Below, one piece after another: positions 1 through 46,929 of a stretch of DNA of 64,000 bases. Positions within the stretch are counted from its first letter, which is position 1. Every line of letters begins with the position of its first letter. The notes under the pieces were generated by a model. That model saw nothing but the letters and a program-made list of their open reading frames with translations, searched no databases and was not told the origin of the DNA. Source of the stretch: Klebsormidium nitens (taxonomy: Eukaryota > Plantae > Klebsormidiophyceae); contig DF236973.1 of assembly GCA_000708835.1 (NCBI GenBank), forward strand, positions 302,436 through 366,435, read 5' to 3'. The translations under genes and the position numbers were made by a program.

Positions 1-809
1 GACACGACGGGAATCTGCAGAACGAGTGGACAAGACTAGCGGCCCCACAACGTATACTAACACTGCTGAAAATCTTCAGACGTTGGCCAAGGGGTCAGAA
101 GCGGCGGTCTCACGAGTTGCCCGCGAATCTCAAAGTGCTTTGAAGGTCTTTGTTCAAGCTGAGACGCCGCCAAGCCACGGCCAAGGACCAATCGGCGACG
201 AGACAACCGCAGCGTCTTCCGACCTAAAGGTAAGTGATTTGAGCCGGAGTGAGCTTCCAAACGCCAGAGCATACTAGGCCTGAATTGAGAATTTTGGACA
301 TGTTCATGTTTCTCATGGGTCCTGTTGAGCATAGCAACTTTTGAAGAGAAACCGCCTACACTTGAAGGTTTCAGAGAGTCTTCATATGTTCATACGTCTT
401 GTTCATTTAAAATCTGCTCGGAAGATTACCGAAGGACCTCTTTGTAATCGATAGCTTGAAGCTCAATTTGCTTGCTCTAGTTCATTCAAAAGCTTGATCG
501 GCTCGAAGGCTTGAATAATTCAAAAGCTTGATCTCCTTGATCTACTCCATAGCCAATTGCTCTGATTTGTCCAGGGAACCGCATTTTCAATCCCAGCACT
601 CTAAACATGTTCTCTTATCTCCCTCTTGTTTGCTACAATATTCCCTGGCAGTATCATTTCGAAGTCTTGTCATCCACACTTCTCACGTTCTTTGTGAGGT
701 CGGATAATTAGGGAAAGCTTCAAGCGCTTACCCCTTTCATATACTCATCCCTCACAGAAGCTCAATGTTTCCAATGCTACCAATCTCATTTCTTCTCTGC
801 AGAACAAAA

Positions 810-3800
810 ATGACTTCCAAAAAATCAACTACGTCAACCAAGTGGACAGCAGTCCTGATAAGCACCTTGGGTTTGCTTGCCCTTGCTCCGGTGCAAGTTC
901 AAGGAGGTTCTGGTGCTTTCGACGGCTCCTCTTACACCTTCTGTGTGGCGGTTCGTTTCGACGCCTCCCCTGACGTCATCACCCGCATTAAGTCTGTCTT
1001 CACAGCGGCAAGCCAGGTACCAGCCCACAAGCTACAGGGGTTTTTGGCCCATAACTAAGGACGGTTCTGGGCTGGTTCTGGGCTGGTTAGAACCGGTTGT
1101 ATGCCCAGTGAGCAGATCTGGGCGTTAGACAGCCTCTGAAACAGTGTTACTAGCCCGGTTGATTGTCCATTAACCCGAGAGTCAAGTCAGCCACGTTAGC
1201 AGCCAGAATCTTCTGCGTTAACTAGACTCTAGAAAGACCGCGCTGTGCCGCTTTGTATACCAGCTCTGGCCTTTCACCTTTGAGTTAGACACTCGAGGTC
1301 TTCAAGAAGGAGAGCACTCCCCCTCTTATGAGCGTCTGAGAAATCTTTTGGTTGCTGAACTAGCTTCATGATCTGGTTGAGATTCTCAAAGAACTCTTCC
1401 ACAGTCAAACCCTCAGAGCACTCCCCCTGTATTCCGACCCATCAACCTTTTTTTTAAAGACAGCACTCCCCTTCAGGCATTCTTAGAAGAGGATCTAGAG
1501 CATCTTTCAAAAGCTGCTTTTTCGATTACGGTTTTGAAAGAAACACTACCGGAGGTTATTGTTGGTTGGCGTTCTGGATCCAGCACACGCATGGCACTGG
1601 AAGGACTGAGCATCCTGTTTTGTCTCTCTCCTTTTGCTGGTGTACATACTTCCAATGGTTGTGCCCGGATGTGAGTGTCATTCCTTCCGCTTGCTTTCCC
1701 CTTGCAAGGAATGCAAAAGGTAGTATTGCTCACTAAATGCCACATCTCTCAAAGCACTGATTATGCGGTGCATGTTCTGAAGTGGTCGTTCCTTGGTCCT
1801 TTCCCTAGAATTCCACTGAGCTTTCTTCCTGCGAGCTCGTGTGTTGTTTCTTAGATCCAGGAAGCCTAGCGACAATGACCTGTTGCTGGCTCTGAGTACT
1901 CTCCGTGCTATCTCGTTGGCTTGTGATTCTCTTTCTTGAGGAAAAAGAATCTCGGCTGTTATGGTAGGGCCTTGACTTGGAAGGCCGCTTCCAGAGTAGA
2001 TCAAAGGAGGCAAAGAGCAACTTGCTAACATGCCCTCTGACTTGCAAGTCAACGTCATTGCTTAAGGAGCCGTAGAACGAGAAGCTCGACCCATTTAGAC
2101 GGAAGTATCCAAACAAGCCATGGAATATAGCAGTCTGATATCAATGTGGCTTGTTTGAAGAAACAGTATCAAAAGAGACCGGAAAGGCCCAATAAACCAG
2201 TCATAGCACCTCATTCTCCCTGTGGACTTCTTGAGCAGGTTTTCAATGACGCGACCGACGGTCAGCAGCGCTTTGGGACCATCAAAATTGTGCCTAATCT
2301 ACTCGAGTCGGACGACGCCGAATTCTACATCCATCAAGAAGAGGGCCGAGCCGACGCCCCGCCAGACGGCTACGGAGTTCGAGGACAAGTGAGCCACGTG
2401 CTATTCGATAACGTCATCTTCGTGGTGTGCTGTAAGCCGTTGACTGGCAATTCAGGAATCAGAATCCTGAAAAATCTGGTGCAGACTAGAGTCCGCTAGG
2501 AATCAACGGGGCCAGTCAAGTCGCTGACGTCAGTGCTCTTTTGTTATCAGTTTGCTTACGTTCTTCTTGTTGAAGTCCTTATTATATTCATACGCGATCG
2601 GAGATTCTGGCCGAGCGTTTAACAGGGTCCTGGATTCAGGCCACAACTGCTTAAAAATCTACAATCTCGTCAGATATTGAACACCTTTGCAACCACAGTA
2701 ACGCCGCTTACGTAACCTACTGATCCCAATCTCGAACGTGCTTAGAGCGAGGACCGTTCGTCGCACAGGCCCAGCAACAAAGGACTTCCGTGTTTTTCCG
2801 TTCACCTGAGACTCTGAATCCCCCCGGCCAATATCACGGAGGCTATCATCGACTTTCCTTAGGAAAAGAGTGTCCGCGTTTTTCAACGTGTCCTTTCTTT
2901 ATAATGCAGCACGTCGAAGTCTGTACTTGCCCAAAGAGTTTGTTCGACCCACGCTTTGTCTTAGCTGCAGCACGTCAAGTTGTGCTGGCTTAGTGACTGT
3001 TTGGTACGCCATCGTTTTCATTAACAGCACGGCCACCTATGCTAATTCAGAGAGGTTGTTTGAAGCCATCCTTTTTTCAACCGCAGCACGTCAACCTTTA
3101 ATGACTCAGTGGGTTTGTTATAAGCCATTCTTTCTCTAAGTGCATCACATCAATCAGTACTGACCCAGTGTTTATTAGTACGGACTTTCGCGAGGGTTAA
3201 ATGTCCTTGATTCGTCAACGCATCCTTTTGTTTGTTGCAGCACGTCAATCTGTACTACCCGGATGATTTTGCGGCTAGCATCGACAGCGGCGCCTTCACG
3301 ATCGCGCACGAGATGGGCCACCATGCTTTCGGACTGCGCGACGAGTATTCGGACGACAAGAAAGTTGCGTGCTCGGACCACACGGACGACCCAAACCTTT
3401 CGTAAGAAGCAACATCTTTCCTCGGTTTGCTTCTTGACAAGTATCCGCCTGTCTGACGTGTCCGACCTGCCCTATCCTTCGATTTTTCAAGTCAGCAATC
3501 AAACCACCGGGGAATGTGCTGGAAGCACAGAACGCGGCAAGTCCGACCTTTTTCCAATTTGAGCTCCCTTCTCCTCACTATACCATTCCCGACGTCCTGT
3601 CCGTATCCTCCCTGAGTTGCAAGTGACCACGAACTCCGGCCTTTCGACGGCATCCTTATGATTGTTCTGAGTTGTAGTCCTGGCATAAAGTGCGGCCCTG
3701 ATCCTGGTTTAGTATGCTCGCGGCGCTTCTAAGGCAGCTGACGGCTCGATTCTAGAGAAAGAATTCTCATCCTTGAAATCTCCGTTGCGTTCAATGTCGC

Positions 3801-6247
3801 AGTGGCGCATGATTCAGTATCTGACAAATTCGAGTGGCTCGACTTAGTGTTCCTCGGTCTTGGCTTTAGGTCGACGAGCTTGTTCACCCTAGCATGGCGT
3901 GGTATTGAAACCCATTCTGGCGAGATATTTCAGCATCCCTGATGCTTTTGAGATTCTGATTGAATCATCGCAGACGTTGTTGCACTTTTCTCTGTACTCT
4001 ACTTCTAATTGGCTTCTTCTAACAATGTATCATCTGACGCTGGATCGAAGCTTGTCGTTCGTGCTTTGTCCTTCTGGTCAACATGTTTCTCGAGACTGCT
4101 TTCCGTTTTGTCTCGGCAGAATACAACTGCAACAGAAGGATGTATCGGTCGTCCTTACTCATTGCATGATCAGACTCTTCGAAGAACGTTTTCTCAAGCC
4201 CAACTAGAGGAATTTCGCAAGCAAAAATGAAGGGAAAAGGCCGCGTATTCACCTGGGCTTGCATCCCTATAGCCAAGCAAACCCTTTGAGAAAGGTTATT
4301 TACTTCATCTCGGCTCAACCGTTACAGGTTTGCCAACCGCCGGGGTGCTAACCAATCTTTCAAACCCACCCCCCTTCGCGCAGGTTTTGTCTGATGGACA
4401 ATTACTTCGCCTACGGCGCTCGGAAGACGGACCCAAGCGCCCGGCCCACGCTCAAGGAATTTTGCGTGCATGACGTCAGCGGAGCCTTATCGCACGACCC
4501 CAACATGGACACGCGGCAGAGCAAGCTGAACAAGGGCCAGTCCTGCTGGGAGACGATCGCGACGCACCCGACTCGGCCGGCCCAGCCCCCAAACCCCGGG
4601 CAACTGCCAAACCCCTTGATTCCGGCCTTGCAGCTGGTCGACTTCGCGGAAAATTCCGGGTTTGGAACCAGTGTGGTTATCGTCATCGACCGGTCCGGCA
4701 GCATGGCGGACGACGGCAAGCTGGAATACGCGCAGGCGGGGGCGATAGCGTATGTCAACTCGCTTATCGAGGGGGATAGCGTGGCCGTCGTATCGTTTGC
4801 CTGCGACGGGGGCACTGTTGATATGGACCTGACGGTTATCGACAAAGACGGGCGGGTTAAGAGCACCGCCAATAATGCAATTCAGGGCCTGGAAGCGGAC
4901 GGTTCGACCGGGATCTCAGACGGGATCGGGTTAGCCGTTAACCTGCTGGTTAGCGCGGCGTCCCGCCCCTGCCGCGAGAAGATCGTTTTGCTGACGGACG
5001 GCGACTGGAACTGCGGAGAGTCTCCCGTCAATCTCATTCCGCTCCTGCAGAAGGAGGGCATCTCGTGCTTCGCTCTGGGGGTCGGGGAGGGTTTGTCGAC
5101 CGGCGGCTTAACCGACCTCCAAACCCTGGCCAAAGGCACGAGCGGCCAGTTCTGGGCGTCCCAGTCGCCCCTTTCTACGGTTAGCACGTTTCTGGGTTTA
5201 AGCGCCGGGAACGTCAACAAACGTCAGCTCGGCTCCCTGGTGGGCGGCGAGGTTTCTACCGGGTCAGGGAATGTAACCGACCCGGTTAAGGTGGGACCCC
5301 TCGAGGCAATGGTCGAGGTTAATGCGACCGAGGTCTCGTTCCTGCTCGTGTTTAACTCGTCCGCCGCTAACCTAACCATCCAAGACCCGACCGGGAAAAC
5401 GCTCCAAGTCACCGGGTACAACTTCACGCGGACGTACAGCAACTTTTCAGTGGCCCAGGCGCCCGCGCCGCTGGCCCCTAACCTGACCGCGGTTAACCAA
5501 ACCTACAACCTGTCCTCCACGACGACGGTCGAGCTGGGGCCAAACTTCGTTTCGGTAACCGTCCAGAAACCCGTCCCGGGAACGTACACGGTGTCGGGCG
5601 TCCAAGTGTTTAACGCGTCGGTTAGCGCCCTAACCCCGGCTCCCGCGCCCGCGCCAAAGCCTGTAGGCTTTCAAGCTCGGCAGGGGGATCCCCCTCCGAA
5701 GCCTCAGTTGGAGCTCTTCGTCTACGGAAGAAACCCTCTGGGCGCCCAGTTGAACGCGCTGGTCGTCAATAACGACACGGTTTACGCGCCTGACCCGGTG
5801 GTTATCGAGGCTAACCTGCTCTTCAGCGGACGCCTCGTGCTCAACGCGACCGTCACCGCTGACGTCTTCTTCCCGAACGGCACCCGGGCCGGCAACTTCA
5901 CCCTGCTTGACAACGGCAATAACAACGACTCGATCGCGGACGACGGCTACTACACCGGACGCTTCTCGGACTACGGCGCAGATACGGACGGCTCGTACAC
6001 CTTCAAGCTGACGGCGCGTTCCGGGCAGAACGCGAGCATTTACCCCGGGGAGAGCTTATTCGCGGCGACTAGCCCCCCCGCGAGCGTGCCTGGAGGGGTG
6101 CCGGACTTCGTGCGTCAGCAGACGGTGTCCGCAGTCGTTGCGGACACGCCGGTGGATTTCGGACAGTTCTCGGTCCCTTCACCTCCGCGGGCGAGGTCTC
6201 CCGCGCCCGCGCCCGCGCGCGCGTTTGGGCCGACGGGGGCACCTTGA
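810..6247 (+). CDS. CLCA: CLCA-like secreted zincin metalloprotease / von Willebrand A protein, ~793 aa; join(810..1016,2239..2388,3241..3401,4384..6247)
   Basis: Four exons join in frame through GT-AG introns (phases 0,0,2), total 2382 nt. There is an N-terminal hydrophobic signal (LISTLGLLALAPVQVQG). Exon 3 encodes IAHEMGHHAFGLRDEY (HExxH...DEY, the CLCA metalloprotease signature). Exon 4 encodes CLMDNY...KEFC...H...QS...SCWETI (CLCA Cys-rich region), a vWA MIDAS (VIDRSGSM, GST, LLTDG) and LLDNGNNNDSIADDGYYTGRF (CLCA C-terminal Ca-binding-type motif). Confidence 0.85.
1033..1217. mobile_element. MITE-like element, family A copy 1 (~185 bp), in CLCA intron 1
   Basis: Shares GGCCCATAAC.AAGGA.GGTTCTGGGCTGGTTCTGGGCTGGTTAGAA and TAACCCGAGAGTCAAGTC with 9697-9877. 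Ends are imperfect inverted repeats (TACAGGGGTTTTTGGC ... GCCAGAATCTTCTGCG). Confidence 0.7.
2890..3265 (+). repeat. Degenerate ~59-bp tandem copies of the CLCA intron 2 / exon 3 acceptor junction
   Basis: Pyrimidine tract + (G)CAG|CACGTCAA motif recurs with AG at 2908, 2969, 3026 and 3085, plus a decayed copy at ~3145. The functional junction is TTGCAG|CACGTCAATCTGTAC at 3240/3241. Confidence 0.75.
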
Positions 6248-6989
6248 AACGGAGGGGTGAAGTTGTAACCTGACGGCGGGAAGAGTCTGTGTAAAAAAGT
6301 TTGACAGAATGTTGAGGCGAAGGGAGTCAGTAGCGTGGACTGATCATCAAGAGGACTGCAAGTTGGTGTACAGTACTTTATCGCAACGGAGATTGAGCGT
6401 CTTGAGAACTCGTGCCTTTGTTAAAACTACAGCGATGAAGGCATAGGATGTGTGGCATCAACCGGCTATGATGCACGTTTCTTACTGGTGCTTTGTACAA
6501 TAGCTTTCAAAACCATTGTAATTGTACAGTAGAGCGTAAGGGCTAATCTCAAAACCTTGGTCGGATTGGAGGCTGAGAACGTCTTAGAATTGTACGACTG
6601 GAACGGTTTGAATGCATTGTCGTCCTTGTATTTCATTGTCTTGTGTATTGCACCTTCATTGGTGCAGATTAAGGGAACTTCACCGGACTTGGCAGAACAG
6701 CATAAGAAATCTTCAATCGCTGAGCGTGACGAACGCCCGTCCCAGACTTTGACCTCAATCTCCAAACTATAGTGACTCCGTCCTTTCGTAACCGAGATTC
6801 TATTGGCGATTTGTCTGAAATAATAAGCCATCATGCTTCTTGGAAGCGCTGGGAAATTCCTGCGGCTGTTTTGCGCATCGTCGATTCGAAGAGGAACCCT
6901 TGCAAAGCGACCTTTACGTGCATGGATTCGAAAAGGATCTTGCCGGTCTCCCACGCGCACTCTTGCTCGTAATTATAAGTTTGATTTCT

Positions 6990-44000: not shown

Positions 44001-46929
44001 CCACGTCCGAAACCGTATTGCGTCTGTAGAGTATCTTGGAAGCTTTCGTGTGTGCATGCGGCAAAGATGCGGGCTACCGGCATCTTTAAGTGAAGCCAGA
44101 GCCTGTCTTCCGGAGCTGAGCTGTAGCACACCTGTCGGACAAACAATTGCTAGCAAGTGTCTCTGAAGAAGCTTGGCTATTCGTGTAACAGAAGGGACTC
44201 TTTACAGAGTCGCTCTGTCGTGCCAAGCTCTGGCTGCGCTGGTCTTTCTCATCGTCCCCTTAATTTTTCTTTTTTATATTCGCTTTCTCTGCCATGCACT
44301 TTGCCGTCTGAGCTTCAAAGAATTTGACTAGAGACACACTTTCGTCCTTCCTTGACCAGGAAAGCAAGCTGTTGAAGCCAAACCTCTGTCCATTTCAGTG
44401 ACGGACCAGTGTAGTTTGCGTCTGACGCCTTTCCCTCACCTTCCTTCCGCAGTGTCGATTTCATGGGCGACTTATTGGAAGTTCTGCGCCGCCTCGCGCT
44501 GGGGGGCGCCGCGCGCCTGCTGGACGACACCCCCGACCCGGAAACCCCCCCGGAGGTGGACGATGACGTCAGCCTGACGCCAGACGAGCAGCTGCAGTGC
44601 TGCGTGGCAGCGTTCCGCATCGTCAAGGGCGCGCTCGACGCGCTCAACGTGGACCTGCGCGACTTCTACGTGCGGCTGTATCAGCTGCTGCCGGAGGTGC
44701 CCTTCGAAAACAGGTAGGGCTTTTGTACTTTTTGGTTGGCTTCAGATAGGGTTTTGGGCTACGGTTAACGAGGCATTGGGCCTTCCTTGGGCGTCAGTCT
44801 CGAAAAGGAACTTTTACTGGCGGCCCTACCAGCTGCTTCCGGAGGTGACCTTTAAGAAAAGGTGAGAATTTGATGTGTTTGAGGTTCTGGGTTTTCTCGT
44901 ACTTGGTGGAAGTTCGCGGTTGGGAGTCTGCCCGCTTCTGTGCGCATCTTCATCAGTTGCTGTCAGAGGTGCCCTGGATTGCAAGTTGTCCCACATGTCT
45001 TTTAGAATCTGTGCCACACTTATGGGGTTTATTGGAAGGGCTTTCCAGGTGCTTCGCGTTTCTTATCGCGCTCTATGTGACCCATGCGGGGGGCTCTGCC
45101 AGCTGCTGAAAAAATTTGCCTTCACGTTTGGGTGCGGCGATCTTACCATTCAACACTCACCGTTAATAATCCATTGCGATTTGGATCATCGCAAGCCATC
45201 GATTCAAATGTAGAGATGCAGAATACTTGCAGAGTATTCAACTCTGCTTTTTCTCCCTCCTTGCAGCGAAATTTTGGGTCCCCCCCGGGGCAGGCCCTTG
45301 AGAGCACTCTATGGGGGCCTCTCAAATCCCATCTGTCAAATCTTTTGTACCAGATCATCCCAAAATTCCTGAAACCCATTGACCTGTAACCTAACTCCTT
45401 TTTGTCTCTTCCAGCGACACTCTGGGCCCCGCCCTGGCCCAAGCGCTCGAGAGCACTTTATGGGAGGCTCGCCAAGTGGACCAGGGCCGCGTCGCGGGTT
45501 TTGCCAAGCGGCTTGCGGGGGGTTCCCTCGCCACCACCGACACTGCCGCTGCAGTCGCGGAGCTGATCGCGCTTCGGCGGCTGTTGCAGCGCCACCCGAA
45601 AGTGGGCTCTGGGATGCTGGATACGGAAGGGGGAGGGGGGCTTACGGTGAGGGACTTACCTCTCCTTTGCTGGATGTAGTGTTTTTCAAGTTCGTGATTC
45701 TGTTTGAGCACGCTTCGGGCCTTCGAGGTGTCCTCCATCATGCTGGAATGAAAGGGGGAGGCTTAAGGTAAATTGACTACTACTTCGTTGCTGTTTATTT
45801 CTTCCTTCGGTCAAGAAAAAGGAGAAAGCCGTGCTTTGCAAAATTCCGGTTGTGGTCCGGTAAGTTTTTTGGTCCCTGGCCCCTATCATGCTTGTGAAGT
45901 ACCTGCAGCAGCAGCAAAGTGGCGATAATGTATAATCACTTAGAAAAGAGCAGCGGTCTTCCGTTGACGTTAGAGTCTCATGACACCGTCAGTGAAAAGA
46001 AGGGGAAAGCGACACCCTTCGTAAAAAGAAGGGGAAAGCGTTGGATAACAAGAGCCTTTACGATTTTTTGCTCGGCAGAATCATGGATTCATTGCCTGCT
46101 CTTAAACGGGGGATATTGGTGACGAACGGCTGTTTTCGTACACCTTGGAGGCCAACCCGCCGGAAAGTCAACAGATTAACTCATGAAAGCGCTCAAGGAA
46201 CCTCGCTGGCTTTGCGCTGAGGAGTCCACGTCAGCCGCTGACGTCCGTCGTCTTTTGCAGGTATACCGCCCCGAGGCTCCCGACCCCGAGAGCAGCGGCG
46301 CGCTTGCGTCGTGCCTGTGGGAGCTGTCCCTGTTAACCCGCCACTTCCACCCCGCGATCGCCAGGCTGGCAGCTGACGTGGCAGCCCTGGCGTCCTCCCG
46401 GGATGCAACCGGTTACCTCGGCCTTACTCCGACCGAGGCAGTCACCGCTTACAGCACGGCTGGGGGGGGCTTCCGACCGGGGATTAAGGCCCCCCGGAAG
46501 AAAGGAAATGCGGGCGGGGGCGGAAAGAGAAAACCCGGGTTTGGTGACGCGTTTGCGAAGTTAGTGGAGGAGAACGAAGTGGGGGGGAGTGGAAGAGGGG
46601 GAAACCAGGGGGGTGGTGAGGAGTTGGTCGGGAGAGCGTTTAGGGTTATGTTTAGGGAGGTTAGGGATCACCGGGACAACTTGGCGCTGAGACGAGAGCA
46701 GCGGAGAGTGGCGGCACTGCAGGCCAAGATGCGGGAGCGGGCGGAACAGCAAGCGAAGCGGAAACGGAAGACGGAACGGATCGCGAATGGTAGTGTAGGA
46801 GGGGTGAATGGAGGGGAGGGCCTTAAGAAGAGCGTTAGAAGAAGAGGACGGTCGAAGGGTCAGAACAAAAGCAAGGCAAGCAGAAAAAGCGAAGCAAACA
46901 GTGAAGGGATGGAAGAAGGTGCCCATTGA
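35070..46929 (+). CDS. NOC3: Nucleolar complex protein 3 (NOC3) homolog, ~944 aa; join(35070..35270,35809..36291,37022..37233,37556..37658,38199..38459,38955..39066,39843..40143,44453..44713,45415..45646,46261..46929)
   Basis: Ten exons join in frame (2835 nt). NOC3 motifs include LLADPE...LKELL, AVFKDICPG|YRIRLPT.KEL..KVSKEV.KLR.FE..LL..Y, LPHFNLRE, AVFETYFRVLK, ALEGLAKLSHLI, DFMGDLL, RVAGFAKRL and YRPEAPDPESSGALASCLWELSLLTRHFHP (CBF/Mak21-type C-terminus). Confidence 0.95.
36760..37095 (+). repeat. ~115-bp echoes of the NOC3 exon 3 acceptor junction
   Basis: The functional GTCGTCCCTAG|GTTGCGTCGCTGCGCGAGTATGCC (37021/37022) is preceded by TTCGTCCCTAG GTTGCATCGCTGCGCGAGTATGCCTAA (AG at ~36906) and a more decayed CTAGCTTGCCGCTGCGC...ATGTGCCTCGG (~36767). 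Confidence 0.85.
37925..38235 (+). repeat. ~101-bp echoes of the NOC3 exon 5 acceptor junction
   Basis: The functional TTTCCTGGCAG|TCTTACGTCCAGCAACTTGTCAAGGCCGCC (AG 38197-8) is echoed at AG 38095-6 (TTTCCTGGCAG TCGTACCTCCAGCACTTTGTTTCGGCCGCC) and AG 37994-5 (CCTCTGGCAG TTTAC). Confidence 0.8.
39480..39960 (+). repeat. Decayed echoes of the NOC3 exon 7 start inside intron 6
   Basis: 39640-39750 (translates ..KEASKLDTRNAAATLQEEAESDV..) parallels exon 7 (..KKAAKLEKRKLAAKLRKEVESDV..). A weaker copy AAGGGGTCCAAGAAGGCGCCTCAGCTGGGAAGG lies at ~39480. Confidence 0.7.
40090..40605 (+). repeat. ~124-bp tandem echoes (functional + 4 copies) of the NOC3 exon 7 donor junction
   Basis: GGCGCTCGAGGG.CTGGCGAAGCTGAGCCATCTGATCAG|GTGGGTTGGCTTGTACCCGCTCT; donor or pseudo-donor positions 40144 (functional), 40268, 40393, 40518 and 40585. 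Confidence 0.9.
44675..44990 (+). repeat. Echoes of the NOC3 exon 8 donor junction
   Basis: The functional TATCAGCTGCTGCCGGAGGTGCCCTTCGAAAACAG|GTAGGG (44714) recurs as TACCAGCTGCTTCCGGAGGTGACCTTTAAGAAAAG GTGAGA (44862) and CATCAGTTGCTGTCAGAGGTGCCCTGGATTGCAAG TT (~44985, donor lost). Confidence 0.8.

Follow-up and report, generated by a model that had tools for sequence, protein, structure and literature searches.

The gene reported here encodes a protein with the architecture of the CLCA proteins of animals. Human CLCA1 cleaves itself and its von Willebrand factor type A (vWA) domain engages TMEM16A. As a family, animal CLCAs are secreted proteases and not channels, with substituted active sites as a documented habit, and a survey published in 2013 found no CLCA_N domain in plants, fungi or amoebae and judged the few bacterial CLCAs to be rare imports from Metazoa (PMC3650047). 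The locus described here lies within a 64,000-nucleotide stretch of DNA from the alga Klebsormidium nitens (assembly GCA_000708835.1, contig DF236973.1, positions 302,436 to 366,435 of the forward strand), which is referred to below as the window. Positions 810-6247 (+) of the window hold a complete four-exon gene with a product of 793 amino acids, to which all residue numbers refer. Our analysis indicates that this is an expressed nuclear gene for a CLCA-like zincin-vWA protease, predicted to be secreted and heavily N-glycosylated, and that it was probably acquired horizontally from a bacterium. Given the negative result of the published survey, the plant lineage thereby gains its first documented CLCA-type protease.

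The gene model is anchored by transcripts. Logan contigs aligned to positions 700-6400 define the coding sequence (CDS) as 810-1016, 2239-2388, 3241-3401 and 4384-6247. All three coding introns are of the GT..AG type and are spliced out in RNA-derived contigs of four runs from four studies (joints 1016/2239, 2388/3241 and 3401/4384), and in the same runs contig depth over the exons is far above that over the introns. While the RNA nature of these runs is a guess, spliced contigs have RNA as their sole possible source and the runs are therefore accepted as transcript evidence. A preliminary description of the locus, made without database searches, had proposed a complete gene with its start codon at 810 and normal spliceosomal introns, which the RNA contigs bear out; they also correct its exon bounds, to 2239-2388 for exon 2 and to 3401 for the end of exon 3. 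The features of the locus are as follows.

1..229, + strand, extending past the window start: upstream non-coding exon of the 5' untranslated region (5'UTR); in three runs at least 255-389 letters precede position 801 and end in the sequence of 196-229.
230..802, + strand: 5'UTR intron, GT..AG, from loose contig ends read against the window sequence.
810..1016, + strand: coding exon 1, with the start codon, the predicted signal peptide (about 810-905) and the beginning of the protease domain; from sequence, family alignment and RNA contigs.
1017..2238, + strand: intron 1, phase 0; spliced in all four runs, with an identical position in the homolog on contig L001 (see below).
2239..2388, + strand: coding exon 2, protease domain, with the conserved DATDGQQRFGTI block; from alignment and RNA contigs.
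2389..3240, + strand: intron 2, phase 0, in which the 3' splice site recurs upstream as degenerate copies; from RNA contigs and sequence.
3241..3401, + strand: coding exon 3, with the predicted zinc site HEMGHHAFGLRDEY at 3307-3348; from sequence, alignment, RNA contigs and profile search.
3402..4383, + strand: intron 3, phase 2, interrupting a Ser codon; from RNA contigs and comparison with L001.
4384..6247, + strand: coding exon 4, 1.86 kb, which completes the protease and Cys region and continues through the vWA domain and the beta-sandwich region to the stop codon; from the list of open reading frames (ORFs) and RNA contigs.
4673..5119, + strand: vWA domain; Pfam VWA at E 3e-14 and alignment to the human CLCA1 vWA structure 6pyo.
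5624..5704, + strand: alga-specific Pro/Ala-rich linker (residues 587-613), missing from bacterial homologs and disordered in the predicted model.
5909..5953, + strand: DNG...DDG.Y motif DNGNNNDSIADDGYY in a predicted Ig-like/macroglobulin-type beta-sandwich; from NF041940, bacterial conservation and fold comparison.

The sequences most similar to the encoded protein belong to a large bacterial family. Searched exhaustively with phmmer, 1.84 billion cluster representatives, standing for 15 billion clustered proteins, yielded 108 clusters (50% identity) at E 1e-30 or better, with E 2.5e-102 over the protease and vWA domains. Among the matches listed, a single protein, P0002, exceeds 42% identity, at 62%; those remaining in the list, 149 in all, combine bacterial-type signal peptides with a low density of N-x-S/T sequons, and nine matches are identical to ORFs of named metagenome-assembled genomes (MAGs) over the 200 C-terminal residues compared. 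As a separate query, the N-terminal 269 residues retrieved 34 proteins of approximately 800-1300 amino acids at 39-49% identity (E down to 7e-56), the named ones being MAG proteins of Pyrinomonadaceae and Robiginitomaculum, and exon 4 used in a word-based search gave weak bacterial matches only. The N-terminal alignment is collinear, with 37-47% identity to 27 members and 28 shared invariant columns, among them positions of the mature N-terminus, of the zinc site and of the LMDN block, and the C-terminal region is 27-37% identical to 14 bacterial members. A scan of one genome per bacterial or archaeal species in GTDB located 43 loci with a relative in at least eight phyla, comprising Acidobacteriota (mainly Pyrinomonadaceae), Verrucomicrobiota, Planctomycetota, Myxococcota, Pseudomonadota, Actinomycetota, Binatota and Cyanobacteriota. 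The K. nitens protein scores 360 bits against bacterial proteins compared with 73 bits against TIGR00868, a profile built from animal sequences.

In some bacterial contigs the family gene is called as two ORFs (L045 3608-6515 and L046 3612-5898), with a short upstream ORF lacking a Pfam match followed by one whose first residue is the Met of the conserved block LMDNY. Such genes could be split or carry a frameshift. Algal intron 3 is located at the conserved block where this break occurs, which may merely reflect the first available Met. Three ORFs starting at the MDNY block (P0095, P0118 and P0161) were considered as intron-split eukaryotic copies and rejected, as their contigs are plainly bacterial.

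P0002 identifies a second plant-lineage carrier. It is encoded on the 26.8-kb Logan contig L001 (run SRR23617307) by a gene with all four exons, three introns at exactly the K. nitens positions and phases, and its own signal peptide. The contig also carries a plant-type LRR gene, and outside the gene itself no synteny was detected between it and the 64-kb window. Since the introns are common to both genes, the transfer and the intron gain would be older than the split of the two. The algal proteins also share an excess of sequons, with 17 in K. nitens against 6.4 expected from composition (z 4.4) and 22 in P0002 against 7.1 (z 6.1), compared with z values of -1.0 to 2.8 for 33 bacterial homologs. 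In K. nitens 16 of the 17 are located past the vWA domain, several of them within alga-specific inserts.

A tree of 74 sequences and 637 columns (LG+C20+F+G4, quick search), rooted on more distant HE.GHY-type bacterial proteins, pairs the K. nitens protein with P0002 at support 100. The pair is placed inside a crown of 56, then 48 rows, and the branches that enclose it have SH-aLRT values of 99 and 97. Several points weigh against a bacterial origin of a functional algal protease. The approximately unbiased (AU) test keeps a placement of the algae just outside 54 bacterial crown rows (lnL difference 18.3, p 0.24), so that it is the SH-aLRT values that argue for nesting. The algal stem is long, at 1.94 changes per column, and its sister within the crown is without resolution. 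The tree was built without animal CLCAs, a homolog search for these based on the bacterial relative P0136 returned the query alone, and the closer affinity to bacteria than to animals is drawn from the score gap. The top matches are mostly metagenome proteins judged bacterial by their features and not by taxonomy. On the functional side, protease function is deduced from the intact catalytic and MIDAS residues only, binding of zinc, secretion, glycosylation and self-cleavage are likewise predictions, and the sister gene has Met for the catalytic Glu, which indicates that catalysis is dispensable in at least one lineage. Nesting of the algal pair within bacterial diversity is accordingly worded here as suggested, not proven; judged from their sequences, all near relatives of the pair are bacterial under either branching.

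The preliminary description had offered two origins, an ancient eukaryotic gene or a horizontally acquired and intronised one. According to the first, a CLCA gene would have descended vertically from an ancestor shared with animals and disappeared from land plants as well as from almost every other eukaryote. This would account for a domain order as in animals, the significant TIGR00868 similarity (E 1e-20), predicted folds that match chordate CLCA models and the presence of spliceosomal introns, and the exact branching point left open by the AU test leaves room for it. We nevertheless regard it as improbable. Bacterial proteins score approximately five times higher than the animal profile, and the algal protein carries hallmarks of the bacterial family that the Pfam CLCA model does not reward. 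The matches listed from 15 billion clustered proteins include just one other eukaryotic carrier, the survey reported no CLCA_N in plants, fungi or amoebae (PMC3650047), and very many independent losses would be needed. The coding introns are also all confined to the first 22% of the CDS, with a last exon of 1.86 kb. Bacterial kinship, tree and introns instead favour the second origin.

Bacterial relatives as nearest neighbours, together with a GC-rich exon 4 (63%, GC3 78%) next to introns of 47-49%, might also be expected of bacterial contamination or an assembly artefact. We give this reading practically no credence, as it is already refuted by three GT..AG introns removed in the RNA contigs of four studies. 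The gene is carried on a 366-kb contig with a eukaryotic neighbour, the same introns occur in the second alga, and the sequon enrichment is typical of eukaryotic secreted proteins. The neighbour is an ORF at window positions 46183-46926 whose CBF/Mak21 domain (E 7e-11) is that of a family of nucleolar proteins of eukaryotes, and it fits an ordinary nuclear context. The exon 4 ORF is the longest in the window, and while its GC3 of 0.78 exceeds that of the other, unverified ORFs there, no conclusion is drawn from the difference.

Between 2895 and 3160, intron 2 repeats its 3' splice site, together with the first 10-20 nucleotides of exon 3, in four to five degenerate copies located upstream of the real one. 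Each copy is laid out as a pyrimidine tract and then GCAG/CACGTCAA, with starts near 2895, 2956, 3072 and 3131 and a spacing of mostly about 60 nucleotides or multiples of this. The RNA contigs use the real acceptor at 3240/3241 exclusively.

The predicted protein begins with a signal peptide, as previously described. Residues 10-33 are its sole strongly hydrophobic stretch (mean Kyte-Doolittle 1.73) and match the bacterial homologs' signal peptides in the alignment as far as a common mature end, G-(N/S)-G-(T/A)-F. The Kyte-Doolittle profile has no hydrophobic segment after the signal peptide, hence no membrane anchor. The zinc site HEMGH...GLRDEY (HEMGHHAFGLRDEY) reads as HExxH followed by G..DE(Y), with the Glu eight residues past the second His. 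In the family alignment the His, Asp, Glu and Tyr columns of this site are invariant and the catalytic Glu column reaches at least 90%. The metal ion-dependent adhesion site (MIDAS) of the vWA domain is complete, with DRSGS (4688-4702), the Thr of ADGSTGI and the Asp of LLTDGD aligning residue for residue with 6pyo. Towards the C-terminus, the region of the DNG..D...DDG.Y motif DNGNNNDSIADDGYY scores 21 bits against NCBIfam choice-of-anchor X (NF041940), just short of the cutoff of 25, and the predicted model has a beta-sandwich with Z of about 10 to many macroglobulin and invasin-type sandwiches. The model ends in a Pro/Ala-rich tail behind this one confident beta-sandwich. The motifs named in the preliminary description are thus all present and in CLCA order, and only its Cys-rich segment proves overstated, with just four Cys in approximately 70 residues of low model confidence between protease and vWA domains.

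Whether the protein is a CLCA depends on how membership is defined. By curated thresholds it is not. Pfam CLCA_N (PF08434) matches at 15.6 bits (E 0.012) against a gathering cutoff of 25.6, and TIGR00868 (hCaCC) at 72.8 bits against a cutoff of 900.85, over model positions 254-549 only, although this match reaches past the vWA domain at both ends. However, 26 of 28 family members likewise match CLCA_N below threshold (best E 1e-5), and the bacterial relative P0136, itself similar to the K. nitens protein at E 1.5e-35, passes at 29.4 bits. Homology to CLCA is therefore likely even though curated membership fails. Structure prediction points the same way. The N-terminal model (pLDDT 75) superimposes on chordate CLCA clusters with TM scores of 0.72, 0.66 and 0.64 over 209-244 residues, both sides being predictions, compared with 0.68 for its own bacterial family and 0.40 for matrixins, and the region C-terminal to the vWA domain reaches TM 0.59-0.60 with chordate CLCA models, again between predicted models. 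Against experimental structures, the catalytic-domain model gives VIA-align Z values of 9.8-8.6 to ADAM, ADAMTS and snake-venom metalloproteinase catalytic domains, Foldseek against the PDB yields weak zincin matches only (E about 1e-3), and the N-terminal region has no PDB sequence match even at E 10. The PDB entries searched include neither a full-length CLCA structure nor a CLCA protease domain. The K. nitens protein can be taken as a CLCA relative by predicted homology and fold, not by curated thresholds. The CLCA-type label of the preliminary description holds for the architecture, by sequence and predicted structure, and gives way where both curated models, a bacterial sister family and the missing FnIII and anchor end are concerned. 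The N-terminal half, on which that label had been made to depend, similarly falls below the CLCA_N threshold while its zincin fold is matched by chordate CLCA and ADAM-type domains.

Database entries describe the gene differently. The exon 4 translation is 100% identical to an 880-residue K. nitens protein in GenBank, UniRef and EukProt, which is placed on the 366-kb contig and named "calcium-activated chloride channel family member 4" in GenBank; CLCA likeness had already been flagged by automatic annotation before this analysis. The identity also establishes the source as K. nitens, where the preliminary description had spoken of an apparent streptophyte alga. The whole-protein analyses reported here were run on this stored protein (P0001), and the others on single exons. 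Its model adds 87 N-terminal residues through exons at approximately 77-229 and 649-702, the latter being without support as a coding exon in the RNA contigs. A joint from 229 to 803 in three runs leaves the upstream ORF out of frame with the ATG at 810, and 230-802 is therefore read as a 5'UTR intron. The 87-residue extension looks like mis-annotated 5'UTR, possibly with an upstream ORF. Literature searches combining CLCA with Klebsormidium or streptophytes gave unrelated ClcA/CLC channel papers, and no paper discussing the K. nitens gene was found.

The database name points to a role as a calcium-activated chloride channel, or in regulating a channel of the TMEM16 type. That name and the vWA similarity to human CLCA1 are all that speaks for such a role, and we consider the chance of it to be very small. 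The protein has no transmembrane segment besides the signal peptide, members of the bacterial family cannot have a TMEM16 partner, and animal CLCAs are themselves proteases and not channels (PMC3650047). The K. nitens protein is not a chloride channel, and both the GenBank name and the first 87 residues of the model need correcting.

Our preferred reading, a secreted protease of bacterial origin, can be set out as a history and a mechanism. The donor would have been a bacterium of the family that is common in soil Acidobacteriota, Verrucomicrobiota and Planctomycetota, and the transfer would have preceded the split from the second plant-lineage alga with the same gene and introns. After transfer, three spliceosomal introns would have entered the gene, each of them within its 5', protease-coding part, and many N-x-S/T sites and the Pro/Ala-rich linker would have been added. 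The signal peptide would direct the protein through the secretory pathway to the wall or mucilage. There, zinc would be held by His142, His146 and Glu154 (or the neighbouring Asp153), with Glu143 as the catalytic base, and the protease domain would cleave extracellular proteins and possibly itself. The vWA MIDAS may bind a partner through a metal ion, and the C-terminal beta-sandwich may serve for binding or as a spacer. That the protein cleaves itself or remodels mucilage or the wall, as raised in the preliminary description, is a guess.

The second alga bears on the catalytic step of this scheme. In exon 3 of its gene (L001 9456-9625) AHMMGH stands where K. nitens has AHEMGH, a change from the catalytic Glu to Met that takes at least two base changes, while GDEY, MIDAS, signal peptide, introns and reading frame are all retained. 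The L001 homolog is, as predicted from these residues, a naturally inactivated sister copy. That so much else is intact in an HMMGH protein speaks for a reading of the K. nitens protein as mainly a non-catalytic extracellular binding or adhesion protein, acting through MIDAS and beta-sandwich with the protease domain as a structural remnant. Replacement of active-site residues is a documented trait of CLCAs (PMC3650047), and the motif is missing in a few bacterial members too. For the K. nitens protein we find this explanation unlikely, as its copy retains all of the invariant or nearly invariant residues H, E, H, D, E and Y, which points to selection for catalysis. The HEMGH copy and its HMMGH relative provide a natural experiment on the importance of catalysis in the family.

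Our results provide a clean case of probable gene acquisition, in which introns, transcript support and donor family can all be seen, and add one more gene, for a putative secreted, wall-facing enzyme, to those that this early land-adapted group of algae acquired from bacteria. The breadth of the bacterial family (108 clusters, at least eight phyla) undercuts the 2013 argument for rare imports and bears on the source of animal CLCAs, and as far as sequence distribution goes it argues for a direction opposite to that of animal-to-bacteria import. A wider and more tentative model, which we hold to be possible but doubtful, is that bacteria are a large, old and diverse CLCA-like reservoir from which eukaryotes drew separately in the Klebsormidium lineage and at the animal root, with the algal protein as a domesticated, glycosylated and self-cleaving wall or mucilage protease. 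If true, separate uptake from bacteria would reverse the published animal-to-bacteria direction.

Of the known systems, the bacterial zincin-vWA family is the closest to the K. nitens protein. Its members in Pyrinomonadaceae, Opitutia and Robiginitomaculum MAGs, annotated just as "VWA domain-containing protein", are collinear with the algal protein over its full length and 40-49% identical in the protease region. Common to both are the mature N-terminus G-N/S-G-T/A-F...FCV.VRF, the zinc site HE..HH..G..DEY, the LMDNYF block, the EFC...HDP...W.TI block, the DRSGS MIDAS and the D(D/N)G...DG.Y sandwich motif. Distinguishing features of the alga include a zinc helix of HEMGH where most bacterial members have HEHAH, three introns, two to four times the sequon density, the Pro/Ala-rich linker and other short inserts, while the C-terminal additions of the bacterial proteins (DUF11/CLIPPER, PPC and T9SS tails) are all missing.

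Animal CLCA proteins (PF08434 with VWA; TIGR00868; MEROPS M87; human CLCA1) have the same order of zincin, Cys-containing linker, vWA domain and beta-sandwich, and an HExxHxxxGxxDEY motif of identical spacing. However, the K. nitens protein has far fewer cysteines and lacks the FnIII domain and the membrane or GPI anchor end of many animal CLCAs. More distantly, adamalysin/ADAM-type metzincins and the M64 IgA peptidase have the zincin catalytic fold in common with the predicted model over 142-172 aligned residues, with a weak Pfam match of M64 at the K. nitens zinc helix. At 9-19% identity neither implies membership by sequence, and whereas the third zinc ligand of metzincins is a His, that of the K. 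nitens protein is predicted to be of the Glu/Asp type, eight residues past the second His.

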